Assembly: GCA_038087875.1 (NCBI GenBank)
Contig: JAXLNO010003381.1
Location: 62,001 to 96,975 of the forward strand
DNA length: 34,975 nt
DNA from: Malacoraja senta
Taxonomy: Eukaryota
Direction of reading: 5' to 3'
In this document: piece by piece, positions 1,557 to 23,239 of the stretch
How the letters are laid out: every line of letters starts with the position of its first letter
Numbering within the stretch: the stretch's first letter is position 1
The notes under the pieces: model-generated
Seen by the model: only the letters and a program-made list of their open reading frames with translations
Told to the model about the DNA's origin: nothing
The model's database searches: none
Program-made: the position numbers and the translations under genes

Positions 1557-1653
1557 ATGGCGGTGGGACAGGGAGAATTCACCCACCAGAAAAGGCCCAG
1601 ATCCAGGGGAACAGTCGCTCTGTTGGTTCTTGTCGCTGTTGGTCTCACACCAG
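1557..1653 (+). CDS. Gene A exon 1: signal peptide of a CD300/pIgR-like Ig-V receptor
   Basis: Strong Kozak GAGACATGG. Encodes MAVGQGEFTHQKRPRSRGTVALLVLVAVGLTP(G) with a hydrophobic core. Phase-1 donor CAG|GTAAAT matches the phase-1 V exon. Not shown as such in the ORF track. Confidence 0.85.
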
Positions 1654-4349: not shown

Positions 4350-4529
4350 GAAGAAACACAAAATGCTGGAGTAACTCAGCGGGACGGGCAGCATCTCTGG
4401 AGAGAAGGAATGGGTGAGGAAACATCACCCGTCGGTTTCTCCAGAGATGCAGCCTGTCCCGCTGAGTTACTCCAGCTCTTTGTGTCTATCTTTGGTGTAA
4501 ACCAGCACCTGCAGTTCCTTGCTGCACAT
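4350..4529. repeat. Foldback (palindromic) repeat insertion with about 13-bp flanking direct repeat
   Basis: 48-bp inverted arms at 4356-4403 and 4438-4485. Flanked by GATCTATGCAAAA (4337-4349) and GATCTATGCGAAA (4530-4542). Paralogs at about 22270-22450 and 30815-31000. Confidence 0.8.
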
Positions 4530-4646
4530 GATCTATGCGAAACCATGAACCTGTCTGAACAGCACAAATTACATGTTTTTTTATTGTTAAAACTCAGCTT
4601 GTGCTGCTGCAGTGTGAGTGATCTTTCATCATTAATGTGCCAACAG

Positions 4647-4970
4647 GGTCATGGGGAGTAACTGGAGCTGTGGAGGTGAGGGGAGAGTTGGGGCAGTCGG
4701 TCACTGTGCAATGTCTATATGGTCAGGAATACAGTGACTACAGGAAACTTTGGAGTAAAGGTGATTATTACTCGACATCTTATACCGTGGTTTCTACTGA
4801 TCTCCCACGACAAGGGAGAACATTGATGACTGATGACAAAAGACAACGGATAGTTTCAGTAACCATCGACAACCTGGAGAAGAGTGATGAAGGACACTAC
4901 TGGTGTGTGATAGCAAAGAGAGGACATTCACCCATTGAATCGACCCCCATCTTATTGAAGGTTTCTGAAG
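4647..4970 (+). CDS. Gene A exon 2: Ig V-set domain V1 (CD300/pIgR/TREM-like)
   Basis: Acceptor CCAACAG|, donor GAAG|GTACGT, 324 nt, phase 1-1, no stop. Motifs VRGELGQSVTVQC.Y, K.W.K, GR...D, SVTIDNL..SDEGHYWC, LKVS. Confidence 0.92.
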
Positions 4971-5547
4971 GTACGTTGACGATCTCTCCTCACTCTCCCA
5001 GATGTGAAAATTCGAGCCTGGGAATTCCGGCCTCGGACCTGACGGTGACTCGTTGACTCATCCCCGGGGGTCGGGGTGAGGGGGCGGGGTTGGTAGATAC
5101 CTCATTTACTGGGGTCCCGGCCCGTGGGGCCACACCAAGAGCCCACTGTCCCAGGAGCAGTATGGGGGGGGGGGGGGACTGCCATACACCAGCCCCACGG
5201 AACGTCCCAGCTACCGGCGGTTCTGATGCTGACGGCTCATTTCCCCAAAGACGATCGCTCCGGGACTAGAATCTCTGCCGGCCCTCACAGGGGCACCCGC
5301 CCCCTCCCTCTCTCGTCCTGCCCGTCACTGTCACACCCACCACACACACAACATCTGAAGTAGGATCCCAAGCCTTTACATCGTCAGTTCATTCCTTCCA
5401 CAGATGTTGCCTGACCTGCTGAGTTACTCCAGCACTTTGTGTTTTGCTCAAGATTCCAGCACCTGCAATTCCTTGTGTCTCACAAACCTTAGTGACCCAT
5501 GAGCTGAGTTTACTGTTGTCACCTGTACTGAGGTGACAAATATAATA

Positions 5548-5935
5548 ATGGATACTTTCAAGAGAGAGCTAGATAGGGCTCTTCACGATAGCGGAGTCAG
5601 GGGATATGGGGAGTAGGCAGGAACGGGGTACTGATTGGGGATGATCAGCCATGATCACAATGAATGGCGCTGCTGGCTCGAAGGGCCGATTGGCCTACTC
5701 CTGCACCTATTGTCTATTGTCCGTTGAGTTACAGGAAAAAGCTTTTACCATGTTTCCAATGAGGCCCAAGTCATTGGATATTTTTAAGGTGCAGATTGAC
5801 AGGTTATCGATTAGTACGGGTGTCAAGCGATTTGGGGAGAAGGCAGGAGAATGGGGTTGAGAGGGAGAGATAGATCAGCCATGATTGAATGGCGCTCAAT
5901 GGGCCAATGGCCTAACTCCGCCTCTATCATTTATG
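5548..5935 (+). mobile_element. Two CR1-type LINE 3' end fragments
   Basis: Typical tails ...GATCAGCCATGATCACAATGAATGGCGCTGCTGGCTCGAAGGGCCGA...CCTATTGTCTATTGTC. The second fragment recurs at about 31975-32170. Confidence 0.65.
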
Positions 5936-6165
5936 AACGAAGAACCCGCATGAGCTGAGTGATATAGACTTTACACGGAGCCACACAAACTGTACAAGAT
6001 GAGATACTCAACGGGATGGGCAGCTTCTGTGGAGAGAGAACGAGAGTTAATGTTTCGGGTAGATTCCTTCAACCAAATTGCATTATTTCCAATTCAGTCT
6101 GCGTAACGCAAATAGTCCATGGATCCTCCCGCTCCCAAGTTCTTCTCCAACGTAGAAGACATGTG

Positions 6166-7549
6166 TTGTTCTTTCCCAGCACTAATAGCATGAGGGGAAG
6201 CCTGGCCCCTTCCGGGTATCTCGCCACCTTCGTTTGCGAGGACTCTCTTGAATCCATATGCATGTGCTCCAGTACGTTCCAACATACTTTAGAATTTGAA
6301 GTCAGTTACCCACTGACCACTTGCACTCCCCTCCACAGAGGGGGAGATTCGTAGACAGCCCTGAACAGGTGCTGCCGCAGACCGCTGCCTTGTGGTATGC
6401 TCATCAGCTATACCTCCGATGTCAGAGTCAGAACAAAACTGACTCCTTGTGCTCACCTCCTCCAAGAGGGAGACATCATGCAGCCCTTCTACGGGTGCTG
6501 CTGCCACGGATATAAAGCTCCTCTTGCTGGAGAACATCATGATGGGGCATCCTCTCCATCAGGAGCTCTTTCTAGACAGCCCTTCAACAGGTGCTGCTGC
6601 CACGGGCCCCTGAGGAGACCCGAGGATATAAAGCTCCTCTTGGTGGAGCATATCGTGTAGGAGCACCTTCTCCATCAGGAGCTCTTTCCTGGACAGCCCT
6701 GATATTCTTTTTATTGGCTCACCAGTCCCAGTTGGTATGGCGAATTTCGATGGCATGCCTGGCACCCCTGGTTCTTGGCTTCCATGCCTTGGGGTATGCT
6801 GTTCTGCAATACCTCCAACCTCAGGGTCAGAACAAAACTGCCCCGGTAAGCTCACCTCCTCCATGAGGGAGACACTATGCAGCCATTCTACAGGTGCTGC
6901 TGCCATGGGCCCCCAAGAAGACCCGTGGATATAAGGCTCATCTTCATGGAGCAGATCTTCCCTGTACAGCCCTTGAACAGAAGCTGCTGCCACGGGACCA
7001 TGGATGACCCACGGATATAAAGCTCCTCCTGGAGCATGTCATGATGTCAGACGTCCGCAGACCTTGCTCCTAGTGGGAGAGGAACTCCTGGCTCGACTCA
7101 TCGGAGTCCAAGGGCCTTACTGATTTTTTTGTGACTTACCTCCCCACAGCAGTAGCCACGGTGCTCATAGTCGGCACCCTGGTGATACCACCTTCCTCGT
7201 GGATTTACCCCTCCACGGGAACCACACCGGTCTGGAAGACGCTGACTGCCTTTGTCAGTGACTGGAGTTCCGCGGTCCAGACCGGAGTCTCCCCACAGCC
7301 CAAAGCCGGTTTCCCCGCGGCCCGTCCGGACTTCGCTACAATATCTAGCAGGAAACGTCTGTAAGAAGAGGTTCCTGCAAGAAAACACAACCTGGTAAGA
7401 AATATAAAACTTACCTGTAGGTTTAAACTTACCGCTGGCGGAAGCGACGCGCCTGCCAGTCCGGTGCTTCGCCATGCGAACGACGATATGAAGCGCATGC
7501 GGACTGGCGGGGCTTCTTCACGGAATCACTCACGTGACTCCGAAGTAAA
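6166..7549 (-). mobile_element. DIRS-like (tyrosine-recombinase retrotransposon) 5'/ORF1 fragment with internal tandem duplications
   Basis: Minus strand starts with a TCACGTGAGTGATTCCGTGAAGAAGCCCCGCCAGTCCGCATGCG-type terminus and has ORF1-like peptides (KFAIPTGTGEPI). No RT or YR domain is visible, so the family is assigned from memory only. Confidence 0.45.
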
Positions 7550-8060
7550 TTTACACTGAGTCACACAAACTGTACAAGATGAGATACTCAACGGGTCGGG
7601 CAGCATCTGTGGAGAGTGAACGAGAGTTAATGTTTCAGGTAGCTACCTCCAACCAAATTGCATTATTTCCAATTCAGTCCTGTAACGCAAATAGTCCATG
7701 GATCCTCCCGCTCCCAAGTTCTTCTCCAATGTAGAAGACATGTGCCTAACTCCAGCAGCAGGCAGATAACACAGCCTGTGGGACTCTGAAGGGCATGAAA
7801 GAAGTATCTGAATGCTTGCGACCATCCTGCGGCATCTTAATGGGTGAGCCGCCTGTCTAGATCAAGAGGCTTGGTCCATCTATGGTGGCCTCAGAAGGAT
7901 CCTTGCTCAAATCTCTGGATTGGGATTTGAACCCAGGAATCTCCCCACACAGAGTAAGAGCGCTCCCAACTGAAGCATCTCCCACACCTCACTAAAGTGG
8001 CACAGAACGTGCTTTCAGACATTTAATGTTCAAAAACTTAATTCACTTTATCTCCACAAG

Positions 8061-8202
8061 AGTCTCAAACACGCCGCCCGGATATGGTCACCACCACCTC
8101 TGCAATAATAAGCACAAGGGCTCTGACCACCCTGCCTCAAGATGCACGAACCACCGAGGCAGCAAGTTCCACTGAGGCTTCTGATTCAATACTTCCAAAC
8201 AG
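8061..8202 (+). CDS. Gene A exon 3: Ser/Thr-rich mucin-like stalk
   Basis: Acceptor TTTATCTCCACAAG|, donor AACAG|GTTAGT, phase 1-2. Encodes (E)SQTRRPDMVTTTSAIISTRALTTLPQDARTTEAASSTEASDSILPN. Paralogous to 32689-32845. Confidence 0.8.
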
Positions 8203-8269
8203 GTTAGTAACTCGACGAGCCAACTCAGCCTCACCTGAGAACAAAGTAGTTAAGTTCAATTCAGCCCAG

Positions 8270-8535
8270 TTAAAAGATACAGCGTGGAAATGGACCCTTT
8301 GGCCCACCGAGTCCGCTCTGAGCAGCGATCTCCCCATACACCAGTTCTGTTCTACACACTGGGGGCAATTTACTACAAACCCGCGCATCTTTGGAATGTG
8401 GGAGGAAACTGGAGAACCCACAGTAAACTCTTGCAATCACAAGGAGAATGTACAAACTCTGCACTGACAGCACCGGTAGTCAGGATCAAACCCGGGTCTC
8501 CTGCGCTGTGAGGCAGCAACTCTACCACTGTGCCG
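8270..8535 (-). mobile_element. V-SINE (HE1-like)
   Basis: Same family as 379-646. A copy sits at the equivalent position after the gene B stalk (about 32920-33200). Confidence 0.75.
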
Positions 8536-8763
8536 ACATCTCAATAGGCGAGCCTCATGTCTAGATCAAGGGGCTTGGTCCATCTATGGTGGCCTTGGAA
8601 GGATCCTTGCACAAATCTCTGGATTGGGATTCGAACCAAGAATCTCCCCACACAGAGCGAGAGCGCTCCCAACTGAAGCATCTCCCACACATCACTAAAG
8701 TGGCACAGAACGTGCTTTTAAACATTTAATGTTCAAAGACTTCATTCACTTTATCTTCACAAG

Positions 8764-9200
8764 GGTCTCAAATCTGTCATCCAGATATCCTCACCACTTT
8801 GGTATGGGGGGGGGGGGCATGGTGGTGCAGCGGTAGAGTTGCAAGCCTTACAACGCTTGTAGCGCCGGAGACCTAGGTTCGATCCCGACTATAGGTGCTG
8901 CCTGTACGGAGTTTTTACGTTATCCCCGTGACCGCGTGGTTTTTCTCTGAGATCTTTGATTTCCTCCAACACTCCAAAGACGTACAGTTATGTAAGTAGA
9001 TTGGCTTGGCGTATGTGTCAATTGACCTTAGTGTGTGACGCCTAGTGTTAGTGTGCGAGGATCACTGGTCGGTGCGGACTCCATGGGCCGTAGGGCCTGT
9101 TTCCGCGCTATATCTCAAAGGTGGTCATCCCACCTCAGGAACCACCACATCCACTCTGCCTCCGGAAGCATCGACCACCTGGTTCATCGCCTCGACACAG
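8764..9200 (+). pseudogene. Duplicated, diverged second stalk exon interrupted by a SINE
   Basis: Upstream intron 8549-8763 duplicates 7846-8060. The exon starts |GGTCTCAAATCTGTCATCCAGAT as in the other stalks, is split by a + strand SINE, resumes with T/S-rich codons and ends at ACAG|GTCAGT followed by the same CCAACTCAGCC motif as after stalk 1. Confidence 0.55.
8806..9120 (+). mobile_element. V-SINE (HE1-like) inserted in the second stalk exon
   Basis: Head GGCATGGTGGTGCAGCGGTAGAG, core TTTCCTCCAACACTCCAAAGACG, tail GGGCCTGTTTCCGCGCTATATCTC. Confidence 0.8.
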
Positions 9201-10416
9201 GTCAGTGACTCAAAGGACCAACTCAGCCTTGCACAGCTTCACCACAGTGTCAACGGCTGAAGTGAGCAGCCCATGATTAACAAGAAGGATAAATACAATC
9301 AGCGAGTTTACTGGCGATCGCCGTGGATTATTGTTACTTACTATATAACAGCAGATATTCCCTCCCTCACACATTGTTCAAAAATCATCTTCGTTCCAAT
9401 CTCCACAGCCTGATCTTCCTCTCCTGGTGCTGTCCAGGAAGAGTACAGACCAGGTGGACTTTGCTACATCGGGAGAGGGCAGCATTCCTGCTGCCTGACT
9501 CGCTGAGTTACTCCAGCATTTTGTGACCATCTACAATCTTTCTCAGTTGTGAAAGTTTGAGTAGAGGGGAAACGTATCCTGTTGTCCGTAAAATCAGTCC
9601 CAGTACTTTGAGAAAGCGTGGCTGATCACATTCCAGTCCATTGATAAATACTCCTTGGCCCTGACTAAAGTCCCTCTGTCCTTAGTACACCCAGTGGCCC
9701 TACCATTGTGAATGTCTACCCTTATTTATTGCCAAAATCTAATAACTTCACACTTAGCACGGTTCAATACCTGCTGGCATTGCTCTGCCCAACATGCCAG
9801 TTGCTTCTTATCCCTCCGTGGTCTATGATTATTGTACTATCCAAAATGATACAATTTTGGTGTAATCTGTAAACTCGTTAATCATACTTCCAACATTAAC
9901 ATCTAAGGCCGGCAGATGGGACTAATGTAGATAAAGGCATCTTGGTCGGCGTGGGGAAATTGGGTCAAAGGACATGTTTTCATGCTCTATGTGTGGCCAC
10001 CAACATGAACATCTAAGTTGTTAATGTATGTAGTCATGGAACACCTCCAAGGAATGGGTGCATGTTGCGATATAAACATCTCACCAATGTCTACGCCACA
10101 ACCTTGGATCACACTGAATGATTCCGTGTGCAATATGATGAAAAGAAAATTCCCAGCGTTGATCTGTGATAAATCTATGTGGAAGTAATAATATTTCCTT
10201 GGATTTCCAGGTACATCATGTTGATTGTTTGCCGTGTTTGGGGTGTGTTACGCTGGGTACTCTTTGGAGTTCTGCTTCTCTTCCCGGTTTCCATCAGCTG
10301 TGTGACAACTTTTAAAAGGTAAAAGTTTGCAATCTCTTCACTCTGGTGTTCACATTAAATTCAATTGGAAATGATGGGAATTTACTTTAGAATTCTGGAG
10401 ATAAAGTGTGGACATA

Positions 10417-11837
10417 CAGTGCCCTCCATAATGTTTGGGACAAAGACCCATCATTTATTTATTTGCCTCTGTATTCCACAATTTGAGATTTGTAATAGAA
10501 AAAATCACGTGTGGTTCAAGTGCACATTGTCAAAGGTATTTTTACATATTTTGGTTCCACCATGTAGAAATTACAGCTGTGTTTATACATAGTCCCCCCA
10601 TTTCAGGGCACCATAATGTTTGGGACACATGGCTTCACAGGCGTTTGTAATTGCTCAGGTGTGCTTAATTGCCTCCTTAATGCAGGTATAAGAAAGCTCT
10701 CAGCACCTAGTCTTTTCTCCAGTCTTTCCATCACCTTTGGAAACGTTTATTGCCGTTTATCAACATGAGGACCAAAGTTGTGCCAATGAAAGTCAAAGAA
10801 GCCATTATGAGACTGAGAAACAAGAATAAAACAGTTAGAGACATCAAGTCAAACCTTAGGCTTACTGAAATCAACTGTTTGGAACATCATTAAGAAGAAA
10901 GAGACCACTGGTGAGCTCACTAATCGCAAAGGGACTGGCAGGCCAAGGTAGACCTCCACAGCTGATGATAAAGAAAAATATCATCTATAATAAAGAAAAA
11001 AAAACAAACACCCTGTCCGACAGATCAGAAACACTCTTCAGGAGTCAGGTGTGGATTTGTCAATGACCATTGTCCGCAGAAGACTTCATGAACAGAAATA
11101 CAGAGGTTACACTGCAAACCACTGGTTAGCCACAAAAATAGGATGGCCAGGTTACAGTTTGCCACAAAGTACTTAAAAGAGCAACCACAGTTCTGGAAAA
11201 AGATCTTGTGGACAGATAAGACAAAGATTAACATATCAGATTAATGGCAAGAGCAAAGTATGGAGAAGAGAAGGAACTGCCCAAGATCCAAAGCATACCT
11301 CCTCATCTGTGAAACACGGTGGTGGGGGTGTTATGGCCTGGGTATGTATCGCTGCTGAAGGTACTGACTCATGTATCTTCATTGATGATACAACTGCTGA
11401 TGGTGGTAGCATAATGAATTCTGAAGTGTATAGACACATCCTATCTGCTCAAGTTCAAACAAATGCCTCAAAACCCATAGGCCGGCTGTTCATTCTACAG
11501 GAAGACAATGATTCCAAACATATTGCAAAAGCAACAAAGGACTTTTTCAAAGCTAAAAAATGGTCAATTCTTGAGTGTCCATGTCATTCTGAACCCAATT
11601 GAGCATGCCTTTTATATGCTGAAGAGAAAACTGAAGGCGACTCTCCCCCAAAACAAGCATAAGCTAAAGATGGCTGCAATACAATATAAATACTGCTGTA
11701 AAAATGGCCTTTATTAATATTTGACAATGTGCACTTTAACCACATGTGCCTTTTTTCTATTACAAATGTCAAATTGTGGAGTACAGAGGCAAATAAATAA
11801 ATGATGGGTCTTTGTCCAAATATTATGGAGGGCGCTG
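10417..11837 (+). mobile_element. Tc1/mariner IR/DR-type transposon, defective
   Basis: TA|CAGTGCCCTCCATAAT ... ATTATGGAGGGCGCTG|TA with TA target duplication. About 210-bp IR with inner and outer ATAATGTTTGGGACA repeats. Frameshifted transposase from ATG 10765 (MRTKVVPMKVKEAI..., WTD, QEDND.KH, NPIEH). A 3' internal deletion removes the inner right DR. Confidence 0.93.
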
Positions 11838-11839
11838 TA

Positions 11840-12116
11840 GGCCCTACAGCCAAACAATTCCGCGCCGAGCAATGATCACCCCGTACACTCGCACTATCCT
11901 ACACACGAGGGACAATTTACAATTATACAGAGGCCAATTAACCTATAAAACAACACGTCATTGGATTGTGGTAAGAAACCGGAGCACCCGGATAAAACCC
12001 ACGCTATCACAGGCAGAACATACAAACTCCCTACAGACAGCACCGATAGTCATGATCAAACCCGGGTCTCTGGCGCTGAAAGGCAGCAACTCTACCGCTG
12101 CGCCACTGTGCCACCC
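11840..12116 (-). mobile_element. V-SINE (HE1-like) whose tail is split by the Tc1 insertion
   Basis: Paralog of 379-646. The remainder of its tail (AGATAAAGTGTGGACA) lies on the far side of the Tc1 at about 10399-10414. Confidence 0.75.
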
Positions 12117-12618
12117 AGGGTCATTTCCTCGGGTAGAATTTGATGATAGTGATTATAAACTGCGTTTTAATTGTTATTCAAGGAAAAAAACAGCCGAGAT
12201 CTTGGAGATGGGGTCGGCAGCGGTGGAGGGAGGAGAGGAACAGCGCCGGTGAGCTGGCTGGGTAAGGCCTCACCTCGCATGGAGACGGCGTGGGAGGCGA
12301 GGGGAAAAGGGTGCGTTGGTGGGTCGAGGTGTGTGCGGAGTGCGAGTGGGCTGCTGGAGGCCCTGCAGCAGCCCGTGGATCGGGTGCCGCTGGAGGTCCC
12401 ACAGAGGTCAGGGACGAGCGCGCGGATCGGACACGGCCTGCAGCGGCACGGAGCGGCGGTGGAGGCACCAACAACATCGCCAGGCCAGGCCGACCCCTGC
12501 AACTCCCACCCACTGCCGTCTCCATGACAACGGGCCTTTAAACCCAAAATAAGACTCTACTTTTTTACCAATTTGATCTTTAAGAATATAAAATACCGCC
12601 AGAAATGTGGCAACTCTT

Positions 12619-13131
12619 TATTTTTATTTTATTAGAAGTAAGTACAATTGCATACAATCATATTTTCATAATACCTTTTATGTACAGCTTCTTATTTAAA
12701 TTTTTTTTTGTAATAAAGAAGAAAAAGAGAAAAGTTAGATAATGAAAAATAGAAAAATGTGAGATATATAGTGTGTGAAAAAGAAAAATAGAGAGTGAAA
12801 AAAGAAAGTTGAGACATAGAAAATAGAAGAAAGAGAGTAAAAGAAGAAAAGAGAAGAAAAGAAAATAGAAGTAAGGAGATCATTTATAATCTTGACCATC
12901 CGCAGTCACGGATTAGCTTTTACACTTGTGTTGCACCATATGTTTCCAAAAAGACGACAAATGGAGACCAACTCGTTATGAATTGGTCAAATTTATCTAT
13001 TAGGAGGAATCGCATTTCCTCAAGATGTGCGGTATCCAACATACTTGCAATCCACATTTTGAGCGTTGGTATTGGTGTATTTTTCCAAAATTTCAATATT
13101 AATTTTTTTGCTATTATTAAACCATAATTAA
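12619..13131 (-). mobile_element. 5'-truncated L1/Tx1-type LINE, 7-bp TSD AACTCTT
   Basis: Minus-strand ORF2 C-terminus (IIAKKLILKFWKN...MWIASMLDTAHLEEMRF...FDQFITSWSPF), pyrimidine-rich 3' UTR and A-rich tail. AACTCTT at 12612-12618 and 13132-13138. A single-copy empty site lies at 1133-1139. Confidence 0.85.
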
Positions 13132-13373
13132 AACTCTTGTGTACTGTATCATATAATCTGCTATTAATACACGTGTTTTTAGCTTCGACTGTGCTTATAT
13201 AAAGGAAGATTTTTACTGAATTCTGTGCAAAAGAAATTTCACTGTACCCATGTACATGAGACAATAAAGTACCATTGAACAATGGGGATATAAAAACGAT
13301 TAAATGATTACAAGTATTGAACTGTGGACACGCGTTAGAAGAATAAGATAAAAATTAAGTGTAATCGTTATAT

Positions 13374-13599
13374 TGTAGCGGCGCCACCTAGCGCACGCAG
13401 ATATCGAACCCGGCGTTCGGAAGCCGCGGTCACGTGATCCGGGAGAGGCCGTTGTTTTCGCGCGGTTTTCCCTTGGCGCGAGTTAGTTGAATGCTAACCA
13501 CCGATGTGGTCAGACGTGTTTGACAAACCTGTGTACTGCAACTTACTTTCGAATAAAGTTTTGGTTGAAACTCCAGTAGTCGTTTATCAAACCGCTAAA
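13374..13599 (+). repeat. Gypsy 5' LTR
   Basis: TGTAGCGG...CCGCTAAA. Contains E-box GTCACGTGAT and AATAAA. 221/226 identical to the 3' LTR. Confidence 0.95.
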
Positions 13600-13600
13600 T

Positions 13601-13618
13601 TGGTGACCCCGACGTGAT
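13601..13618 (+). promoter_or_regulatory. Primer binding site complementary to the tRNA-Trp 3' end
   Basis: TGGTGACCCCGACGTGAT is the reverse complement of the vertebrate tRNA-Trp 3' 18 nt (ATCACGTCGGGGTCACCA, from memory). It begins 1 nt after the LTR. Confidence 0.9.
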
Positions 13619-13641
13619 AGCCGTCGTTAGACAGAAGAATT

Positions 13642-14382
13642 ATGCAGGAAGAAGGTCCCTCTGCAGAATCGGCCAGCACGAGGCAAGGCTCACCGGCTTT
13701 CAAACTGCCCGCCTTTTGGACTGATCAACCTCAAGTATGGTTCGCCATTGTGGAAGCGCAATTCCACCTTCATCGTATCGACCACGATGAGACCATGTAT
13801 TTTCATGTGGTAGGAGCGTTACCGCAGGACTGTGCCTCGAGGCTGTTGCCCTTTATCAGAGACCCTCCGTCCAGCGGCAAGTACGAAGGGTTGAAGGCCC
13901 TGTTGTTTCACGCTTATGGTCTGACCCGTAGAGACCGGGCGGCAAGACTGCTGCACATGGACTGCATCGGCGACCGAAGGCCATCGACGATCATGGCCAA
14001 GATGTTGGCCCTGATGGACGTGCATCGACCCTGTTTGCTTTTCGAACAGGCGTTCTTAGAGCAGATGCCTGACGAAGTGCAGCTGATGTTAACAGGAGCT
14101 GATTTCATTGACCCGCAGCGGCTCGCAGAAAGAGCAGATGAGCTCTGGGCGCTCAGACGGCGGGAAGTACACGCCGTCGCCCGCCCCATAGTCACACAAC
14201 ATGTGCAGCCGCTCCGACAACGAGAGGAAGAGACTCAGCCCAGCGTCGAAGACGAAGCGTCGCGGACATCGACCTACTGCCAACGGAGATGGTGCTACTA
14301 CCACCAGCGATACGGGCTCGGAGCCCAAAGATGCCGAAGCCCTTGTGCGTTTCCGGGAAACGCCTCCGCCGATCGTCCATAG
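13642..14382 (+). CDS. gag: Gypsy Gag (246 aa, uninterrupted)
   Basis: N-terminal FKLPAFWTDQPQVWFAIVEAQF. C-terminal C-x2-H-x9-C-x3-C (CYYHQRYGLGAQRCRSPC). Confidence 0.9.
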   Translation: MQEEGPSAESASTRQGSPAFKLPAFWTDQPQVWFAIVEAQFHLHRIDHDETMYFHVVGALPQDCASRLLPFIRDPPSSGKYEGLKALLFHAYGLTRRDRAARLLHMDCIGDRRPSTIMAKMLALMDVHRPCLLFEQAFLEQMPDEVQLMLTGADFIDPQRLAERADELWALRRREVHAVARPIVTQHVQPLRQREEETQPSVEDEASRTSTYCQRRWCYYHQRYGLGAQRCRSPCAFPGNASADRP

Positions 14383-17300
14383 AGGCGAACGCGATCGGCC
14401 CAAACACACGCCTATTCGTCCGTGATCGCCATGCCGGTTACCGTTTCCTGGTAGATTCAGGTGCGCATGTCAGTATCCTGCCTCCACAACACCCGGGACC
14501 TCCGTGCGGGTAAGGTGGGACCTGTGCTCTCGGCCGTAAACGGGAGCGATATTCGCACCTACGGTACGCGGACCGCAAAACTAAATTTCGACTCCCACCA
14601 GTACAGGTGGAAGTTTATCGTTGCTGACGTCGCCCAACCGATCCTGAGCGTCGATTTCTTGCGCGCGTTCTCCCTGTTAGTCGACGTACGGGGTGATCCC
14701 TGCGTCGGGCCCACGCCCTGACACACCGCGCAACCCGTCAACGCCCTCGCAGCAACTATCCGAGGTAGCTGAGATCCAGAAACCTTTCACGACCCTGCTC
14801 GCCGATTTTCCAGGGTTACTCACGCCCCGGTTCGACGGGGCCGCGCCCCGTCATGGCGTAGTCCATCACATTCCCACCGAGGGTCCACCAGTGCACGCCC
14901 GCGCGCGCTGTCTCCCGCCCGATAAACTGCGCATCGCGCGGGACGAGTTCCAGCTCATGGAGGACATGGGAATTGTCCGGCGGTCGGATAGCCCATGGGC
15001 TTCCCCGTTACACATGGTACCTAAAGCGTCCGGGGGTTGGAGGCCTGGCGGCAAATATCGACGTCTAAACGCAATAACCACGGATGACCGGTATCCGGTC
15101 CCGAACATTCAGGATTTCTCGGCCCATTTGGAAGGGGCGACCGTCTTCTCGAAAGTCGACCTCATCCGTGGGTATAACCAAATCCCGGTCCACCCTGACG
15201 ACATCCCTAAGACGGCCACCATTACCCCGTTCGGCCTTTTCGAGTGGCTCAGAATGCCTTTTGGCCTGAAGAACGCAGCCCAGGCATTCCAAAGGTTAAT
15301 GGATCAGGTCGGCCGGGGTTTGCCATTCGTTTTCATCTACCTGGATGACATCCTGGTAGCCAGCCGCTCGGAGGCAGAACATACCAAACACCTCCGCTTA
15401 CTTTTCGAACGGCTGCACGAACACGGGTTGGTAATCAATCCCGAGAAGTGCCAGTTCGGGCTGCGCTCTATCTCGTTCTTGGGGCATAGTATCACTTCCC
15501 AGGGAGCGCAACCCCTGCCCGAGAAAGTTGACGCCATTCGGCAATTCCCCCGGCCATTGTCGTTTAAGGGTCTCCAGGAGTTTATCAGGATGGTTAACTT
15601 CTATCACCGTTTCGTCCCGTCGGCAGCCGCCATCTTGCGGCCGCTATTCCAATGCCTGGCTGGTAAGCCCAAGGACCTAGTTTGGTCTAAGGAGGCACAG
15701 AAAGCTTTTGAAGGGTCCAAGACGGCGTTGGCCAACGCCACAATGCTAGTACACCTCAGGGCTTCGGCCCAATCGGCACTAACCGTAGACGCCTCCGATG
15801 TCGCGGTGGGGGCCGTCCTTGAGCAGCGGGTAGGCAGTCGCTGGGTGCCGCTGCCGTTTTTCAGCAAGCAACTGCGAGCCCCGGAAATTAAATACAGCGC
15901 TTTCGGCAGGGAGCTCCTTGCGCTTTACCTAGCAATCCGCCATTGCCGCTATTTCCTAGAATGGCGAGCTTTCACCGCATTCACCGATCACAAGCCACTG
16001 ACGTTCGCTTTGACCAAGGTTTCCGATCCATGGTCTGCTAGGCAGCAACGGCACCTTGCCTACATTTCGGAATTCACGTTCGACATTCGACATGTGGCAG
16101 GAAAGCTGAATGTCGTGGCCGACACATTATCTCGTCCAGCGCTGCCCGAGGTCTCTGCGCTCAGTCTGGGTATCGATTACCAGGAGTTGGCCGCTGCCCA
16201 ACGGGTATGGGGATTTACCACAAAACTGAATCTGGAGTGAAGCTGGTTGAAGTGCCTTGTGGCGCCTCCAGCGCGTGGGTCCTTTGTGATGTTTCCACCG
16301 GTAAAGCCCGACCAATTGTCCCGGTCGCTTGGCGATGCCGGGTCTTCGACACCATCCATAGTTTAGCGCACCCATCAATTCGCGCTACCTCTGCCCTAGT
16401 CGCTGCGAAGTACGTCTGGCATGGCTTGAGGAAGCAAGTCGCTGCATGGGCTCGTTCCTGTATCCCATGCCAGACCTCCAAAGTGCAGAGACATGTACAC
16501 CCGCCGGTCCAGGATTTCGATGTCCCGGACGGCCGGTTCCTGCACATCCATGTAGACCTGGTAGGTCTCCTACCTTGTTCGCGCGGGGCTACCCACTTAC
16601 TGACTATCGTGGACAGGTTTACCAGGTGGGCAGAGGCCATCCCGTTAGCGGATACCTCCGCCGAGGCATGCGCGAGGGCCATTGTCTCGAATTGGGTCGA
16701 CCGTTTCGGGGTCCCCTCACATATAATGACAGACCGCGGGGCCCAGTTCACATCTTCCCTATGGGGCAGTATGGCGCAGATGTACGGTGCCACGTTACAT
16801 CAAACTACTGCTTACCACCCTGAGTCTAATGGGCTGGTCGAGCGATTCCACAGACATCTTAAGTCGGCGTTAAAGGCACGACTCACCGGCCCTGATTGGG
16901 TCGACCAGTTACCTTGGGTCCTCCTGGGCATCAGGACAACGCCCAAGGAAGACCTCAAAGCATCCTCGGCCGAGTTAGTTTATGGCTCGGTTTTGCGGGT
17001 TCCAGGGGATTTCTTGCCTACCCCCCGGGATCAGGAGAATGCCACCTCGCAGGTGTTGGAGGACCTTCACGAGCGGGCGCGCACTTTGGTCCCAGTCCCA
17101 ACTTCCCGGCACGGTTCATCTTCGGTTCATGTGCCTTCTGTGTTACGGGATTGTTTTTCTCCGTAGAGACGCTCATCGCTCGCCGTTACAGCGGGTGTAC
17201 GAGGGTCCGTACAAGGTGCTCAATGCGGGGGTTTCAACATTCACTTTGGACATGGGCGGCAGAGAGGAGTTTGTTTCTGTAAGCCGCCTCAAGCCTGCAC

Positions 17301-17570
17301 ATGTCGACGAGGATAGCCCAGTGACAGTGGCTACCCCACGGCGTAGAGGACGTCCACCTGCCGTTTTGACACCTTCAACACCCGTTCCCTCCGATCGCGT
17401 TTCTCTGTTCCCCTTTGTTACGCCCGTCCCTCGGTTGCGTTTTTCGCGTCCCTCCGGTCCTGTTGTGCCGGTCCCAAATGTTACGCTCGCCCCACAACCT
17501 CGGACTACACGTTCCGGTCGCACCGTCCGTTTACCCGTGCGTTTCCGTACCGCGGATTTTGGGGGGGGCC
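14355..17570 (+). pseudogene. pol: Gypsy Pol (protease, RT, RNase H, integrase with GPY/F) broken by 4 frameshifts
   Basis: PR FLVDSGA; RT PFGLKNA...YLDD; RNase H DAS, ELLA, TDHKPL, ADTLSR; IN HHCC, VDLVG, TDRGAQF, GLVERFH, YEGPYKV. Spread over ORF-track pieces 14289-14513, 14461-14721, 14693-16240, 16207-17166 and 16982-17635. Confidence 0.93.
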
Positions 17571-17571
17571 A

Positions 17572-17797
17572 TGTAGCGGCGCCACCTAGCGCACGCAGAT
17601 ATCGAACCCGGTGTTCGGAAGCCGCGGTCACGTGATCCGGGAGGGGCCGTTGTTTTTGCGCGGTTTTCCCTTGGCGCGAGTTAGTTGAATGCTGACCACC
17701 GATGTGGTCAGACATGTTTGACAAACCTGTGTACTGCAACTTACTTTCGAATAAAGTTTTGGTTGAAACTCCAGTAGTCGTTTATCAAACCGCTAAA
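17572..17797 (+). repeat. Gypsy 3' LTR preceded by polypurine tract (17561-17568)
   Basis: Direct repeat of 13374-13599, followed by the ATAT TSD. Confidence 0.95.
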
Positions 17798-17949
17798 ATA
17801 TCAATATTGTTATTCTGCTGGAATGACGCCCAATAATCATCGTTTAGCTTATCAGGGCCAGAGTGTTCACCAGTTGGAGATGTACAAATCTCATCACCTT
17901 GATCCTACAGCATCACCACACCACACCTGTGTCCAATTTAACTTGACCA

Positions 17950-18520
17950 CTAGAGGAGGAATTTCTTTAGCCAGAGGGTGATGAATCTGTGGAATTCATT
18001 GTCACAGACGGCTGTGGAGGCCAAGTCAATGGGTATTTTCAAAGTGGAGATTGATTGGGTTTACTCAGGGTGTCAAAGGTTGAGGGGAGAAGGCAGGAGA
18101 ATGGGTTGGAGGGGGAAAGATAGATCATCCATGATTGAATGGTGTAGACTCAATGGAGCAAATGGCCGAATTCTGCACCTATGTTTGCAGACACATCCTG
18201 ATATTCACCCAAAAGACAGCAGTACGTAGACTAGAACTCAAAGCTGGTTCTCCAGAGTGTGAACTTTTAATTTTGTTACCAATTGAATTTTTTGTAAAAC
18301 CCTGCAACATTGAATAATGAATAAAATAATCCAATGTAATAAAAGATGCTGAATTTTTGTCATATGGTCATGTAATAAGAGTAGCATTGGGCCATTCGGC
18401 CCATCAAGTCTCCTCCGCCATACAATCATGGCTGATCTATCTCTCCCTCCTAACCCCATTCTCCAGCATTCCCTCCATAATCTCTGACCTCTATGTACTA
18501 ATTAAGAATCTATCTGGTGT
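17950..18520. mobile_element. Cluster of CR1-type LINE 3' fragments in both orientations
   Basis: About 17950-18185 (+) reads like NLWNSLSQTAVEAKSMGIFK.EID. About 18380-18500 is the reverse complement of a similar tail. The block is absent from the paralogous position near 1430. Confidence 0.6.
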
Positions 18521-19113
18521 TTATCTGGTGACGTGAGTGGACTTACCTGATCACGTTTGGCGTTGTCTAATTTCTCCTGGGTAACGTTTCAACACATGAG
18601 AAGCTGAGGAAGGCTGGACAAATTAGTGACGCGCATTTGGAGGTGGGTAAACAGTTCACAAGGTCACACGTTCCAGGAGTAGAATTTGGCCATTCGGCCC
18701 ATCGAGTCTACTCCGCCATTCAAACATGGCTGATCTCTGCCTCCTAATCCCATACAAGTTCAGACACAGTGTGCCCGCATTTGGGGGAGGGGTTGACGGG
18801 GTGGGCAAGGGAATGTTTGCGGTGGTGGACAGAGCGCCAGTCAAGTGGGCAAATGTCACCAGGATGAACCAGAGCTTCGAGGAGATGCTCCAATCCAGGC
18901 AACTGGAGAGCATTGCAGCCAACTCCTGATAGGTGCATTGTCCGTGGTGAGGAGGCTGGGGGAGGTGGCAAGTGAGTCACCAAGTTAGTCTCGAACCACT
19001 GCAAAGTCGTTTCCTGAGTAAACGGAAATTGACTGTTTGACTTCTGTTGTGAATGAGGAAGAGGACAACTCAAACGCAGTGCAGGGACCAAACCGATCCA
19101 ACGCAGCCGAGAC

Positions 19114-19210
19114 ATGGCGGTGGGACAGGGAGAATTCACCCACCAGAAACGGCCCAGATCCAGGGGAACAGTCGCTCTGCTGGTTCTTGTCGCTGTTGGT
19201 CTCACATCAG
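19114..19210 (+). CDS. Gene B exon 1: signal peptide
   Basis: 94/97 nt identical to 1557-1653. Encodes MAVGQGEFTHQKRPRSRGTVALLVLVAVGLTS(G). Phase-1 donor CAG|GTAAAT. Confidence 0.85.
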
Positions 19211-19469
19211 GTAAATCGTTGTTTTACAAAATGCTCTGTTCTTTAGAATTATTTACCAGCGCCTTGAATTATTTGTAACCAAGGACTTCTCTGTACTGTG
19301 TGGGGAGCTGATGATAAATTGCTCAACACTCGTTAGTTCCTGTAGAGACTTCCATCAGCGGTTGTTGTCGTGATGTGTGCAGCCAAATTGCACACAGCTA
19401 GCTCCCTGTGGAGAAGGGAGATAACTACCGACAGCTGGCCTTGTGGACCTCATTGAAACTTACTGAATA

Positions 19470-19705
19470 ATGCAATGCCTGGATAGAGTGGATGGGGTGA
19501 GGATGTTTCCACTAGTGGGAGAGTTTCGGACCAGAGGTCGCAGCCTGAGAATTAAAGGGCGTTCCTTTAGGAAGGAGATGAGGAGGAATTTCTTTAGTCA
19601 GAAGGTGGTGAAACTGTGGAATTCATTGCCACAGAAGGCTGTGAAGGCCTTCAATAGATATTTCTAAGGCAGAGATGGATCGATTCTTGATCAGTACGGG
19701 TGTCG
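19470..19705 (+). mobile_element. CR1-type LINE ORF2 C-terminal fragment
   Basis: Encodes CLDRVDGVRMFPLVGEFRTRGRSLRIKGRSFRKEMRRNFFSQKVVKLWNSLP. A shorter paralog lies at about 1945-2030. Confidence 0.8.
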
Positions 19706-19977
19706 TTCGCTCACGGCGGCGCTCCCTCCCCTCCAGTCACCGTGCTTCACGCACACAGACCCGGCTCCACCCCTCTCTCTCCCCGGGGAGACGCGGTGAA
19801 AAATACACGGAGGGCTGGGCAGGGGGTTTGAGCAACGTTTACAAACATCGGCCTCAGCTCACACCCGGACCCCAGCATCAGCTCCCGCCGCTGGCCCTCT
19901 CCCTCCCTTCTCTCCTTCCCTCTTCCCTTCCTCCCTTCTTTCCTTCCCTCCCTCCTTCCTCTCTCTTTTCCCTTCTC

Positions 19978-20109
19978 NNNNNNNNNNNNNNNNNNNNNNN
20001 NNNNNNNNNNNNNNNNNNNNNNNNNNNNNNNNNNNNNNNNNNNNNNNNNNNNNNNNNNNNNNNNNNNNNNNNNNNNNNNNNNNNNNNNNNNNNNNNNNNN
20101 NNNNNNNNN
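19978..20109. other. Assembly gap (132 N) between a CT-rich and an AC-rich simple repeat
   Basis: Run of N, inside gene B intron 1. Confidence 0.99.
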
Positions 20110-21250
20110 CCACAGACAACTAACACACACACATAACGCACAGACAACTAACACACACAACTAAGTTAGGATGGGGTAGAGGCCCAAAGGGTAGGATGGG
20201 GCTGAAGCCCAAAATTTAATGCCTGGATTGGTTTTTCACCAATGGTTATTGGTTTTCCAGGATCTATTTAATTAAATTACTTTTTTTTAAAATCATTTCA
20301 CAGTCACTAAAACAAGTGGTATTGTAACTATGTACTTTTCAGAGGTGATCTACACATTTTGTTTGTAGGCTTACATGTATGCAATTTTATATTAATTTTA
20401 TATTAAAATGTCGCTTAGATCAGTTAAAATGTCGCTTAGATCAGTTTGGTCCATTAAGTTGCATGCATTTTTTAAGTGCACATTTTGATTACTTTGCATT
20501 CTACCATAGGGATATAAAGTCTAGAATAGACTTTAATCAAATTTCTATGAATCTACAGACCTTGGCTGGGAACCTGGGGCTCGCCAAAATTGTTCCCAAT
20601 TGGGCCCCGCAACTCCTAAGGCCGGCCCTGCATGTACCTGTCTAACTGTTTCTTAAACGATGGGATAGTCCCTGCCTCAATTACCTCCTCTGGCAGCTTG
20701 TTCCATACACCCACCACCCTTTGTAATTGATGACACATCATAATTATTCCAGGTGGACGTGGAGTTTGAAACATCAGTGGCAGATCCAGCTTCCACCACA
20801 GGCCGGGAAGTTTAGTTCAACGGGGCACAAAGTGCTGGCGTAACTCAGTAGGTCAGGGAGTATCTCATGGTCTTGACTTGAAACGTCACATATCCATGTT
20901 CTCCAGAGATGCTGCCTGACCTGCTGAGTCACCACTGGCACCACAGGCAGCTGGCTATTCAGCTTTAGTAAAGCACAAAGTGCTAGAGTAAGTCAACAGG
21001 TCAGGCAGCATCTCTGGAGAACATCGATAGGTGACGTTTTGGGTTGAGACCTGAATAAGGGGTAGGCCAGATGAGGAAAAACCTTTTCACCCAGAGTTGT
21101 GAATCTGTAGAATTCTCTGCCACAGAGGGCAGAGGAGGCCAATTCACTGGATGTATTCAAGAGAGAGTTAGATATAGCTCTTAGGGCTAATGGAATCATG
21201 GGATATGGGGAGCAAGCAGAACGGTACTGAATTGGGATGATCAGCCATGA

Positions 21251-21830
21251 ACAGTCTGACCTGGTCACAAAACATCGCATCACTAGTTAAGAGAGCGCAG
21301 CAGCGGTTGCACTTTCTGCGCCGGATGAGAAGAGCTCACCCTCCCCATCCCATCCTCACCACTTTCTACAGGGGCACCATAGAGAGCATTTTGACCAGCT
21401 GTATTTCTGTCTGGTCTGGGGACTGCAAAGCCTCCGACTGGAAGTCCGTGCAGAGAGTGGTGAGGACGGCTGAAAAAATCATCGGGACTTCTCTTCCTTC
21501 AATCCGGGACATTGCATGCAAACGTTGATTGTCCAAGGCCAACAGCATTATAAAAGCCCCCACACATCTCCATCATGGACTGTTCACTATGCTGCCCTCG
21601 GGCAAAATATATCGCAGTATAAGGAGCAGAACGGCCAGGTTTTGCAACGGCTGCTACCCCCGAGCCATCAGACTCTTGAATTCCATATAATGTGCCGCCA
21701 CTATTATCTATTTATCTATTTTATCCTTTTGTTATTTTATGTTGCACGGTGAGCCAGATGCAACAAAATTTTGTTCCGACTTGCATTTGTTGGTGTACTT
21801 TTGAATGACAATAAAGTCTTTGATTGAAAA
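21251..21830 (+). mobile_element. Rex1/Babar-type LINE 3' fragment nested in a CR1 tail (about 21070-21910)
   Basis: Encodes KRAQQRLHFLRRMRRA...ILTTFYRGTIESILTSCISVW. It splits the CR1 consensus GATCAGCCATGA|TCATATTGAATGG. Confidence 0.75.
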
Positions 21831-22559
21831 TCATATTGAATGGCAGAGCTGGCTCGAAGGGCCGAATTGCCTACTCCTGCGCCTATTTTCTATGTTTATA
21901 TGTTTCTATGAATCGTCACCTATCCACTTTCTCCAGAGATAGTTCCTGACCCGTTGAGTTACTCCAGCACTTTGTGTCCTTTTGTGTATTAACCAGCATT
22001 TGCAGTTCCTTGATTCTACCAGTTTAATGGGGAAGTGGGTTGTACTGAGATTGAACACAGGGTGGGTCAGAGTGAGAGACAGGTTGGCTTCCTGTCACAT
22101 GACCACCACTCAGTGCAAGCCACGCCCACAGGGAAGGAGGATCTGGGCGCCAGGTAAATTCAGAAGCAGTTCTGCTTTCACTGGAACTTGGGGAACAATC
22201 CCAGGGAACTGGGAATTAACACCAGCGGGAAAAGCATGAAAGTGCAACAGGATCTGTACAAAAGAAGAGACAAAAAATGCTGGAGTAACTCAGCGGGACG
22301 GGCAGCATCTCTGGAGAGAAGGAATGGGTGAGGAAACATCACCCGTCAGTTTCTCCAGCGATGCTGCCTGTCCTGCTGAGTTACTCCAGCTCTTTGTGTC
22401 TATCTTTGGTGTAAACCAGCACCTGCAGTTCCTTGCTACACATGATCTATGCGAAACCATGAACCTGTCTGAACAGCACAAATTACATTTTTTAAATTGT
22501 TAAACCTCAGCTTGTGCTGCTGCAGTGTGCGTGATCTTTCATCATTAATGTGCCCACAG

Positions 22560-22883
22560 GGTCATGGGGAATAACTGGAGCCGAGGAGGTGAGGGGAGAG
22601 TTGGGGCAGTCGGTCACTGTGGAATGTCAGTATGGTCGGAAATACAGTGACTACAGGAAACGTTGGAGTAAAGGTTATGATTTATGGTCATCTGAGACCG
22701 TGGTTTCTACTGATCGCCCACGACGAGGGAGAACATCGATAACAGATAACAAAACACAACGGATAGTTTCAGTAACCATCGACAACCTGCAGAAGAGTGA
22801 TGAAGGACGCTACTGGTGTTTGGTAGAAAAGGAAAGAGATTCACCCATTGAATCAGCCCCCATCTCATTGAAGGTTTCTGAAG
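22560..22883 (+). CDS. Gene B exon 2: Ig V-set domain V2
   Basis: Acceptor CCCACAG|, donor GAAG|GTACGT, 324 nt, phase 1-1, open frame. 79/108 aa identical to V1. Confidence 0.92.
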
Positions 22884-23239
22884 GTACGTTGACGATCTCT
22901 CCTCACTCTCCCAGATGTGAACATGCCAGCCTGGGAATTCCGGCCTCGGTCCTGATAGTGACTCAGTGCCACATCCCCGGGGGTCGGGGTGAGGGGGGAG
23001 GGGACCTCATTTACTGGGGTCCCGGCCCGTGGGGCCACACGAAGGGCCCCACTGTCACAGGAGCAGTATGGGGGGGGGTCGGGGAGATGTCAGACACCAG
23101 CCCCACGGAAGGTCCCAGCTACCGGCGGTTCTGCTGCTGAGGCTCATTTCCCCAAAGATGATCGCTTTACTGGGGAAACCGGCCCCTCACCTGGAGAAAG
23201 GGGTCAAGGGGGGAGGGTAGGGAGCAGGTTAGTAGAAGA

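Follow-up and report, generated by a model that had tools for sequence, protein, structure and literature searches.

Two neighbouring receptor genes (A and B) in a 34,975-nucleotide stretch of the genome of the skate Malacoraja senta, here called the window, carry sister immunoglobulin (Ig) V domains, V1 and V2, that differ predominantly by replacement changes. Across a set of 17 skate V exons the nonsynonymous rate exceeds the synonymous rate, and the selected sites are enriched in three loops of the domain. Taken as a whole, these data make it quite likely that V1 and V2 are sister domains of neighbouring genes of the skate MDIR type, evolving under positive diversifying selection on ligand specificity.

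Gene organization and family assignment

The exons of both genes are listed in Table 1. Reading frames are unbroken across every exon of genes A and B in the window, and V1 and V2 are intact 324-nt exons of phase 1-1, preceded by an AG acceptor and followed by a GT donor, with the codon frame running from the third base of the exon (+2; 4649 and 22562). All 33 residues of the gene A leader are identical to the N-terminus of the Amblyraja protein P0157, and the gene A transmembrane (TM) segment is 77% identical to that of P0002 by tblastn. V3 clusters with the Amblyraja second domain in the tree of V exons, and a search for a leader exon between V2 and V3 found none. The assembly gap touches none of the compared exons and, because it is intronic, raises no concern about the reading frame; its flanks are collinear and in the same orientation within the single leader-to-V intron of two other skate loci (L001 and L004), so that the continuity of gene B across the gap is supported, though not proven, by the sequence. 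Overall, the window is ~90% identical to Leucoraja and Amblyraja loci and ~84% identical to Rhinoraja loci.

Table 1. Exons of genes A and B, homologous intron blocks and the assembly gap, numbered from the first nucleotide of the window
Feature	Positions	Strand	Character	Basis
Gene A leader exon	1557-1653	+	ATG; 32 codons plus 1 base	GT donor
Intron block 5' of V1	4009-4646	+		Homologous to 21923-22559 (5.3% diverged) and 30470-31089
V1, gene A	4647-4970	+	Ig V-set exon, D1-type, phase 1-1	Pfam, AF2, Foldseek
Intron block 3' of V1	4971-5259	+		Homologous to 22884-23166 (8.6% diverged)
Gene A stalk exon	8061-8202	+	Ser/Thr-rich	tblastn with P0002, P0155 and P0157; splice sites read
Gene A TM exon	10211-10318	+	Arg within TM segment	Splice sites read
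Gene A last exon	12183-12252	+	Short cytoplasmic tail and stop	tblastn with P0002 tail, 78%; sequence read
Gene B leader exon	19114-19210	+		Alignment with gene A leader; tblastn
Assembly gap (N)	19978-20109		Intron 1 of gene B	Between gene B leader and V2
V2, gene B	22560-22883	+	Ig V-set exon, D1-type, sister of V1	Pfam V-set, E 2.6e-13
V3, gene B	31090-31413	+	Second Ig V-set exon, D2-type	Pfam V-set, E 1.9e-14
Gene B stalk exon	32689-32845	+		tblastn; splice sites read
Gene B TM exon	33453-33568	+	Uncharged TM segment	tblastn, 78-86% to P0155/P0157

The three V exons match the Pfam V-set domain with E-values from 1e-11 to 1e-14 (1.8e-11 for V1). The AF2 model of V1 (pLDDT 93.8) has nine strands, and its Foldseek matches at ranks 1-10 are all CD300lf/CD300f, the top match being CD300lf with a TM-score of 0.86-0.91 and ~35% identity. 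In profile searches against the PDB, pIgR gave the best match (E 1e-80, with all five pIgR domains matching), followed by CD300f (1e-35), CD300a (5e-26), NKp44 (2e-20) and TREM2 (1e-13). The nearest matches in sequence and structure are thus CD300, pIgR, NKp44 and TREM rather than antibody or T-cell receptor V domains. The cysteines of the canonical B-F disulfide (C22 and C86) and the strand-C tryptophan (W35) are invariant or almost so in alignment A1. The second intradomain disulfide, which links the W-C of strand C to C', is absent: all 11 skate V domains have W-S, W-R or W-T at this place and contain only two cysteines, and both extra cysteines are kept in 40 of the 46 other family members. 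The absence is a derived loss inside this family, and members from Pristis and Scyliorhinus lack the bond as well.

The two genes differ in the part that follows the V domains. The TM exon of gene A encodes ...VWGVLRWVLF..., with an arginine in the membrane segment, and its tail exon stops after 22 residues; by these sequence features gene A is an activating-type receptor chassis. In gene B the TM segment is uncharged and shows 78% identity to its counterpart in the ITIM-bearing P0155 (motifs VIYTTV and VVYATI). Cytoplasmic exons of gene B were not found within the window, and no ITIM-encoding exon was seen in its last 1.4 kb (33571-34975). Gene B is putatively inhibitory, and both genes are presumably expressed. 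As judged from their sequences, genes A and B are neighbouring members of the already known skate CD300/pIgR-like (MDIR-type) family.

Divergence of V1 and V2

A sequence-only reading of the window had claimed, from a hand alignment, that V1 and V2 show a strong excess of amino-acid-changing substitutions, and recounting reproduced its figures: 36 of 324 nt differ, affecting 29 replacement codons and 3 silent ones (GCT/GCC, ACT/ACA, TCG/TCA), and the leader exons differ at 3 of 97 nt (two silent changes and one Pro->Ser). The ~3:1 ratio of nonsynonymous to synonymous sites that it expected is close to the calculated one of 3.4:1 (N = 247.8, S = 73.2), against which 32 nonsynonymous and 4 synonymous differences (Nd and Sd) are observed. 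Its proposal that dN/dS exceeds 1 is marginal for the pair alone and strong over the 17 paralogous and orthologous V exons considered below. For V1/V2 the NG86 estimate of dN/dS is 2.5 and borderline (Fisher p 0.05-0.09, two-sided p 0.09), pairwise maximum likelihood (ML) gives an omega of 2.9-3.1 (LRT p 0.02-0.03), and ML over the three window exons V1-V3 gives 2.5 (p 0.01). With just 4 synonymous changes, the exon-only test of the pair is weak.

V1 and V2 group as sisters with 97% bootstrap support, and the promoter and leader of genes A and B are nearly the same, with no divergence over 110 nt and 3% over ~430 nt. When the changes are polarised with outgroups, replacements fall on both branches, at 8N:1S for V1 and 13N:2S for V2. 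The exons are more diverged than the introns around them (11.1% vs 6.3%); pN is 0.129 vs 0.063 for the flanking introns (p 0.001) and pS, at 0.055, lies near the intron value. The two intron blocks of Table 1, with their gene B counterparts, served here as the neutral yardstick, which is unreliable: A-B divergence is uneven, at 3% at the 5' end, 10.6% in mid intron 1 and 5.3% and 8.6% at the V flanks, and the introns have a mosaic history. Were the exon's actual neutral divergence ~10%, dN/d(neutral) would come to ~1.2.

Of the pairs compared, V1/V2 and L001_13613/L004_13968 were the only ones with clean flanks. A pooled intron comparison over other independent pairs was discarded, several flanks being non-homologous or mosaic and forced into alignments at 12-33% mismatch. 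The leader exons were likewise set aside as a control for omega; they are too short and too conserved, with a pooled pN/pS of 1.54 from very few changes.

Codon models over the skate V exons

The wider set comprised 17 intact V exons from the window and three other skate genomes, every one of which retains an open frame, splice sites, both canonical cysteines and the tryptophan. A single-ratio model (M0), fitted like the other codon models with our own code, checked by simulation alone, gave an omega of 2.28-2.32 (LRT 23.7, p 1e-6). Site models, which had been suggested together with the initial observation, presuppose a single tree without recombination; M2a was favoured over M1a with an LRT of 118.6, M8 over M7 with 122 and M8 over M8a with 119. 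Under M2a, 32% of sites have an omega of 6.7, and ~24% of sites have an omega near 0. In 20 replicates simulated under the M1a null the LRT was at most 5.3.

The excess does not depend on a tree. Over eight independent pairs, Nd is 161/1944 and Sd 24/597, a pN/pS of 2.05 (p 3e-4), and pN exceeds pS in all 28 non-Rhinoraja pairs. Omega is 2.78 in the non-Rhinoraja subset, 2.46 (p 0.003) in the D1 clade of four sequences, 1.95 with the CDR3 columns removed and 2.32 with equal codon frequencies. Among the Rhinoraja copies by themselves, the exon as a whole has no significant excess (omega 1.5).

These results bear on the idea that V1 and V2 have drifted neutrally under constraint relaxed after duplication (omega ~1), the 29:3 ratio being sampling noise in one pair of 108 codons. 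Such drift would accord with the two-sided Fisher p of the exon-only test and with the framework sites outside the loops, which lie near the intron rate (pN 0.075-0.099 vs 0.063). Neutrality is nevertheless rejected by ML both for the pair and for the three window exons, and again family-wide and in the tree-free pairs; moreover, all 17 exons and the in-window reading frames of both genes are intact, and about a quarter of sites evolve with an omega near 0. We regard relaxed constraint as quite improbable.

Mutational bias might also inflate replacement counts, whether through hypermutable CpG sites in CGN (Arg) codons or through skewed transition/transversion ratios and codon composition. Three of the V1/V2 replacements are CpG transitions (Q/R in columns 26 and 56, H/R in column 84), and these columns rank among the inferred selected sites. 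When all 41 columns having a CpG in any sequence are removed, however, M0 still gives an omega of 2.12 (p 0.005), and M2a is still favoured with an LRT of 56; furthermore, kappa was estimated, F3x4 and equal codon frequencies yield the same omega, and kappa-weighted site counts increase the ratio. An explanation by mutation alone is thus hardly credible.

Distribution of selected sites and a possible role of gene conversion

The changes between V1 and V2 had been described as clustered after Cys1, in the C-C' loop and after Cys2, and an excess in the loops is confirmed: 20 of 88 sites in the extended loops are changed vs 12 of 160 elsewhere (p 0.0012), a clearly non-random distribution. Over the family, the selected sites, whose NEB posteriors derive from a small data set, were placed on the predicted structure by means of the DSSP string of the V1 AF2 model, and they fall disproportionately in loops BC, CC' and FG (8 of 19 vs 11 of 88, p 0.005). 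About a quarter of sites are invariant, in the core strands B, E and F and at the canonical disulfide and tryptophan.

One of these loops raises the question of whether the signal could be an artefact of recombination, loop patches having been copied from distant paralogues (for example, from V3 into V2) so as to mimic an omega above 1 and the site-model result. A patch in the CC' loop (TGGTCATCT..GAG) is unique to V2 and V3, holds 6 of the 36 V1/V2 differences and may stem from one event; 12 consecutive polymorphic sites agree between the two exons (Sawyer-type run, uncorrected p 0.005), a result that is not significant once corrected for 28 pairs. The heterogeneous A-B intron divergence (3% to 10.6%) and the conflict between upstream and downstream flanks in the A-C and B-C comparisons are also what conversion would leave, and conversion between the paired CD300A and CD300C genes has been reported in primates (PMC12447643). 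On the other hand, the pS of V1/V2 equals the intron value, masking the patch leaves an omega of 1.9 and a significant intron test (p 0.03), and the test over independent pairs, which requires no tree, stays significant. Conversion transfers synonymous and nonsynonymous differences together and therefore cannot alone produce dN > dS. As the whole explanation it is improbable; at least the CC' patch of V2 and V3 may be a product of gene conversion instead of separate point substitutions, and conversion is more likely a contributor, shuffling selected loop variants, than an alternative to selection.

Diversifying selection, the explanation that we favour, has probably operated as follows. V1 and V2 would be the membrane-distal, ligand-binding domains of neighbouring genes and would have arisen as sister exons when a leader-plus-V module was duplicated or exchanged, V1 coming to lie on an activating-type chassis (arginine in the TM segment, short tail) and V2, followed by V3, on one with an uncharged TM segment of the kind seen in an ITIM-bearing skate relative. 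After duplication, replacements have been fixed in both domains at two to three times the rate of silent or intronic substitutions, gathering in BC, CC' and FG, the loops that make up the binding face of CD300-type domains, and the same selection on ligand specificity probably spans the whole skate subfamily. CD300lf, the closest solved homologue, binds murine norovirus through its CC' and CDR3 loops (PMC7162533), which are CC' and FG among the selected loops. The selective agent may accordingly be a pathogen or a ligand that pathogens mimic, and an arms race of this kind is a plausible driver of V1/V2 divergence.

A more speculative extension, which we think unlikely on present evidence, is that cartilaginous-fish innate receptors diversify in the germline by loop cassettes: promoters and leaders would stay nearly identical, sister V domains would be driven apart at an omega of ~3, loop segments would be copied between V exons of one gene and the CC' disulfide would have been lost. 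If this were true, the arms races of decoy and counter-decoy among paired receptors would be older than the split between cartilaginous and bony vertebrates.

Comparison with known receptor systems

Mammalian CD300 molecules (CMRF35-like; CD300lf is also CLM-1) offer the closest structural parallel to V1. They are clustered type I receptors with single IgV domains and include activating members, with a charged TM residue, and inhibitory members, with ITIMs; positive selection has been reported at the CD300 locus (PMC3418551, PMC7162533). CD300 domains keep the C-C' disulfide that the skate domains lack, however, and the number of V domains in a skate gene ranges from one to several; the likeness is one of family. 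The polymeric immunoglobulin receptor, the best profile match, shares the multi-V architecture, and the closest skate proteins carry the NCBI name 'polymeric immunoglobulin receptor-like'. In the skate genes, by contrast, stalk and TM segment are short, an activating or inhibitory chassis replaces the transcytosis tail of pIgR, and the V domains are without the second disulfide.

According to PMC3031540, which cites Cannon et al. (2006, Immunogenetics 58:362), the skate modular domain immune-type receptors (MDIR) are activating and inhibitory Ig superfamily receptors that are encoded by a large multigene family and resemble CD300, TREM/TLT and pIgR. Genes A and B come from the same host group and have the same architecture and paired chassis, a match to that published description rather than to aligned MDIR1-5 sequences. 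In the literature surveyed, we found no documentation of dN/dS above 1 for the family. The present data supply a quantitative case for strong diversifying selection on skate CD300/pIgR-like (MDIR-type) receptors, with an omega of ~2.3 over the whole domain and of ~7 at a third of sites, and they single out individual loop residues, together with a pair of genes of which one is activating-type and the other putatively inhibitory, for ligand-binding work.

KIR/LILR, Ly49 and the teleost NITR and DICP receptors are likewise encoded by clustered duplicates, pair activating with inhibitory members whose ectodomains are almost the same and show an excess of replacements at ligand-contact residues. 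They differ from the skate receptors in Ig subtype or fold and, as families, share no homology with them, so that the parallel is one of analogy only. In receptor families of this kind diversifying selection is expected to show as an excess of replacements in ligand-contacting loops; both the skate family and this mode of evolution were already known, and what we describe is no new kind of system but an extension to cartilaginous fish of the arms-race pattern of mammalian paired receptors.

Gene models

Three Ig V-set exons lie in the window, V1 in gene A and V2 and V3 in gene B; A and B are two neighbouring CD300/pIgR-like receptor genes. All three are 324 nt long, AG/GT-bounded and of intron phase 1-1, and they match the Pfam V-set with E-values of 1e-11 to 1e-14. 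Genes were modelled on skate proteins from an exhaustive HMMER search, the templates being 'polymeric immunoglobulin receptor-like' or 'CMRF35-like' proteins from Leucoraja, Amblyraja, Rhinoraja and other elasmobranchs. The reading frame of gene A is open from end to end and, as predicted from its sequence, the gene is an activating-type receptor; no second V exon of this gene was found in the window. The transmembrane segment of gene B is 78–86% identical to those of two skate templates, P0155, in which ITIM-like motifs are present, and P0157 from Amblyraja. The final 1.4 kb of the window contains no ITIM exon, so gene B is a putative inhibitory receptor; neither its tail exon within the window nor a leader exon between V2 and V3 was found.

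The window's sole run of Ns falls between the leader and V2 of gene B, in intron 1, and therefore touches no compared exon and does not put the reading frame at stake. Its flanks are collinear and in the same orientation within the single leader-to-V intron of the Leucoraja and Amblyraja loci, which supports, without proving, the join across the gap.

Positions of exons and other features in the window
Feature	Gene	Position	Remark
Leader	A	1557-1653
V1 (first V)	A	4647-4970	codon start 4649
Stalk	A	8061-8202
TM	A	10211-10318	Arg within membrane segment
Tail	A	12183-12252	short, stop included
Leader	B	19114-19210
V2 (first V)	B	22560-22883	codon start 22562
V3 (second V)	B	31090-31413	codon start 31092
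Stalk	B	32689-32845
TM	B	33453-33568	uncharged
Identical 110 nt	A / B	1437-1546 / 18994-19103
5' flank, leader, intron 1 start	A / B	1437-1870 / 18994-19428
N run	B	19978-20109
Gap flanks, left / right	B	19211-19945 / 21069-22559
CC' region	A, B	V1 4754-4780; V2 22667-22693; V3 31197-31226
Shared CC' string	B	V2 22682-22696; V3 31212-31229
Palindromic element		4365-4478; 22278-22391; ~30825-30940	last copy upstream of V3
Transposase ORFs	A	~10700-12100	last intron
Tc1/mariner-like copies		239-1140; 11699-12618
Last exon of upstream gene		704-778	within first Tc1/mariner-like copy
Direct repeat, 226 bp		13374-13599; 17572-17797	between genes A and B

Selection on the V domains

Diversifying selection on the V domains, which the sequence-only reading had suggested from a replacement excess between V1 and V2, is supported, modestly for this pair and strongly for the family of 17 exons. 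The original counts are exact: V1 and V2 show 36 nt differences, with 29 amino-acid-changing codons and 3 silent ones, and the leader exons differ at 3 of 97 nt, two of the changes being silent. NG86 estimates (S 73.2, N 247.8, Sd 4, Nd 32) give a dS of 0.057, a dN of 0.142 and an omega of 2.5, with a borderline Fisher test (p 0.053 one-sided, 0.09 two-sided). Pairwise maximum likelihood under a GY-type model, with kappa estimated at about 2, yields an omega of 2.9–3.1 (LRT 4.9–5.7, p 0.02–0.03), and V1, V2 and V3 jointly an omega of 2.5 (p 0.01). The homologous introns flanking V1 and V2 differ at 34/637 positions upstream and 24/280 downstream, 6.3% overall, a value near pS (5.5%) and half as large as pN (12.9%; Fisher p 0.001). 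This yardstick is soft because the intron history is mosaic: A–B divergence is 3% near the leader, reaches 10.6% in mid intron 1 and stands at 5.3% and 8.6% beside the V exon, with upstream and downstream flanks disagreeing in comparisons with V3. Polarised with outgroups, replacements fall on both branches: the V1 branch carries 8 N and 1 S and the V2 branch 13 N and 2 S, with 12 N at hypervariable sites ambiguous.

The family comprises 17 unique intact V exons, three from the window, three from Leucoraja, two from Amblyraja and nine from Rhinoraja. Their tree joins V1 and V2 as a sister pair with 97% bootstrap support, within a 'D1-type' clade, and the Amblyraja second domain groups with V3. 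Site models, run with our own codon-likelihood code, are listed below.

Codon-model tests of selection on V exons
Test	Omega	LRT	p
M0, 17 exons	2.28-2.32	23.7 (vs omega = 1)	1e-6
M2a vs M1a, 17 exons	6.7 at 32% of sites, near 0 at 24%	118.6-118.8
M8 vs M7, 17 exons		122
M8 vs M8a, 17 exons		119
Null: 20 data sets simulated under fitted M1a		at most 5.3
M0, 8 non-Rhinoraja exons	2.78		1.6e-6
M0, D1 clade of 4 sequences	2.46		0.003
M0 without CDR3 columns	1.95		6e-4
M0, equal codon frequencies	2.32		3.3e-7
M0 without all 41 CpG-containing columns	2.12		0.005

After removal of the CpG columns the M2a LRT is still 56. Taken alone, the Rhinoraja exons show no significant excess across the whole exon (omega 1.5) and have a small site class at omega 11. 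In a tree-free sum over eight phylogenetically independent pairs, Nd is 161/1944 and Sd 24/597; the ratio is 2.05, and 2.32 when sites are weighted by kappa (p from 3e-4 to 2e-5), and pN exceeds pS in all 28 non-Rhinoraja pairs.

The BC, CC' and FG loops, assigned from the secondary structure of an AF2 model, are enriched in sites whose posterior exceeds 0.95 (8 of 19 loop residues versus 11 of 88 elsewhere, p 0.005). For V1 and V2 alone, pN is 0.23–0.26 in loops and 0.075–0.099 outside; mean omega is low in the A'B and EF loops, and the domains retain the canonical Cys and Trp. The closest homologue with a solved structure, CD300lf, binds the capsid of murine norovirus through its CC' and CDR3 (FG) loops (PMC7162533). 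A pathogen arms race, the agent originally proposed, may reasonably be inferred.

Gene conversion could also move loop sequence between domains. The CC' loop string TGGTCATCT..GAG is common to V2 and V3 and absent from the other 15 of the 17 exons, which would be compatible with intragenic micro gene conversion within gene B; a Sawyer-type run test yields an uncorrected p of 0.005 and loses significance once corrected for 28 pairs. If a single event, the patch explains about 6 of the 36 V1/V2 differences, and with it masked the V1/V2 omega is 1.9. Conversion probably contributes to loop shuffling, but alone it cannot create dN > dS.

The 5' module and repeats

Upstream of the ATG region, genes A and B share an identical stretch of 110 nt. 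From the 5' flank through the leader to the start of intron 1 the genes are only 3% diverged, against 6–11% in the V blocks and about 16% in the stalk region, and their leaders are 98–99% identical to those of Leucoraja and Amblyraja. This suggests that the promoter-plus-leader module of an activating and a putatively inhibitory gene was recently exchanged or is strongly constrained.

The intron upstream of every V exon holds a palindromic element some 115 nt long (ctggagtaactcagcggg ... cccgctgagttactccag) that resembles a MITE/SINE-type repeat of a kind common in cartilaginous fish; short versions occur elsewhere in the window. Remnants of Tc1/mariner-like transposase ORFs occupy the last intron of gene A. 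The two Tc1/mariner-like copies are 91% identical, and within the first lies the final exon of a further activating-type gene, whose start is upstream of the window. The direct repeats, 97.8% identical and 4.2 kb apart, may be a retroelement LTR pair. In Rhinoraja longicauda (CM130186.1, 32.51–32.65 Mb; loci L002 and L003) nine very similar V exons, each with its own leader, recur every ~11–15 kb within two giant annotated 'genes' (41 and 64 kb), in which the annotation pipeline has probably fused several tandem single-V genes.

Relationship to CD300 and pIgR

A search profile built from 57 V domains matches all five domains of pIgR (E 1e-80) and, next, CD300f (1e-35), CD300a, CD300c, NKp44 and TREM2. 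AF2 models V1 with confidence (pLDDT 93.8), and the structures that match the model best are those of mouse CD300lf (TM 0.86–0.91, 35% identity). Skate receptors of such description have been named MDIRs (Cannon et al. 2006, as cited in PMC3031540), a likeness of description and not of alignment. Whereas the second (C-C') disulfide is a defining feature of CD300/pIgR domains and is kept in 40 of 46 other family members, it is absent in all 11 skate V domains examined, and a cluster of positively selected sites falls at its position. In the CC' region, W-S... replaces the W-C...C typical of CD300/pIgR. Positive selection has been described for the CD300 locus (PMC7162533; PMC3418551); both the family and its evolutionary mode are already known, and the V1/V2 genes add a member.
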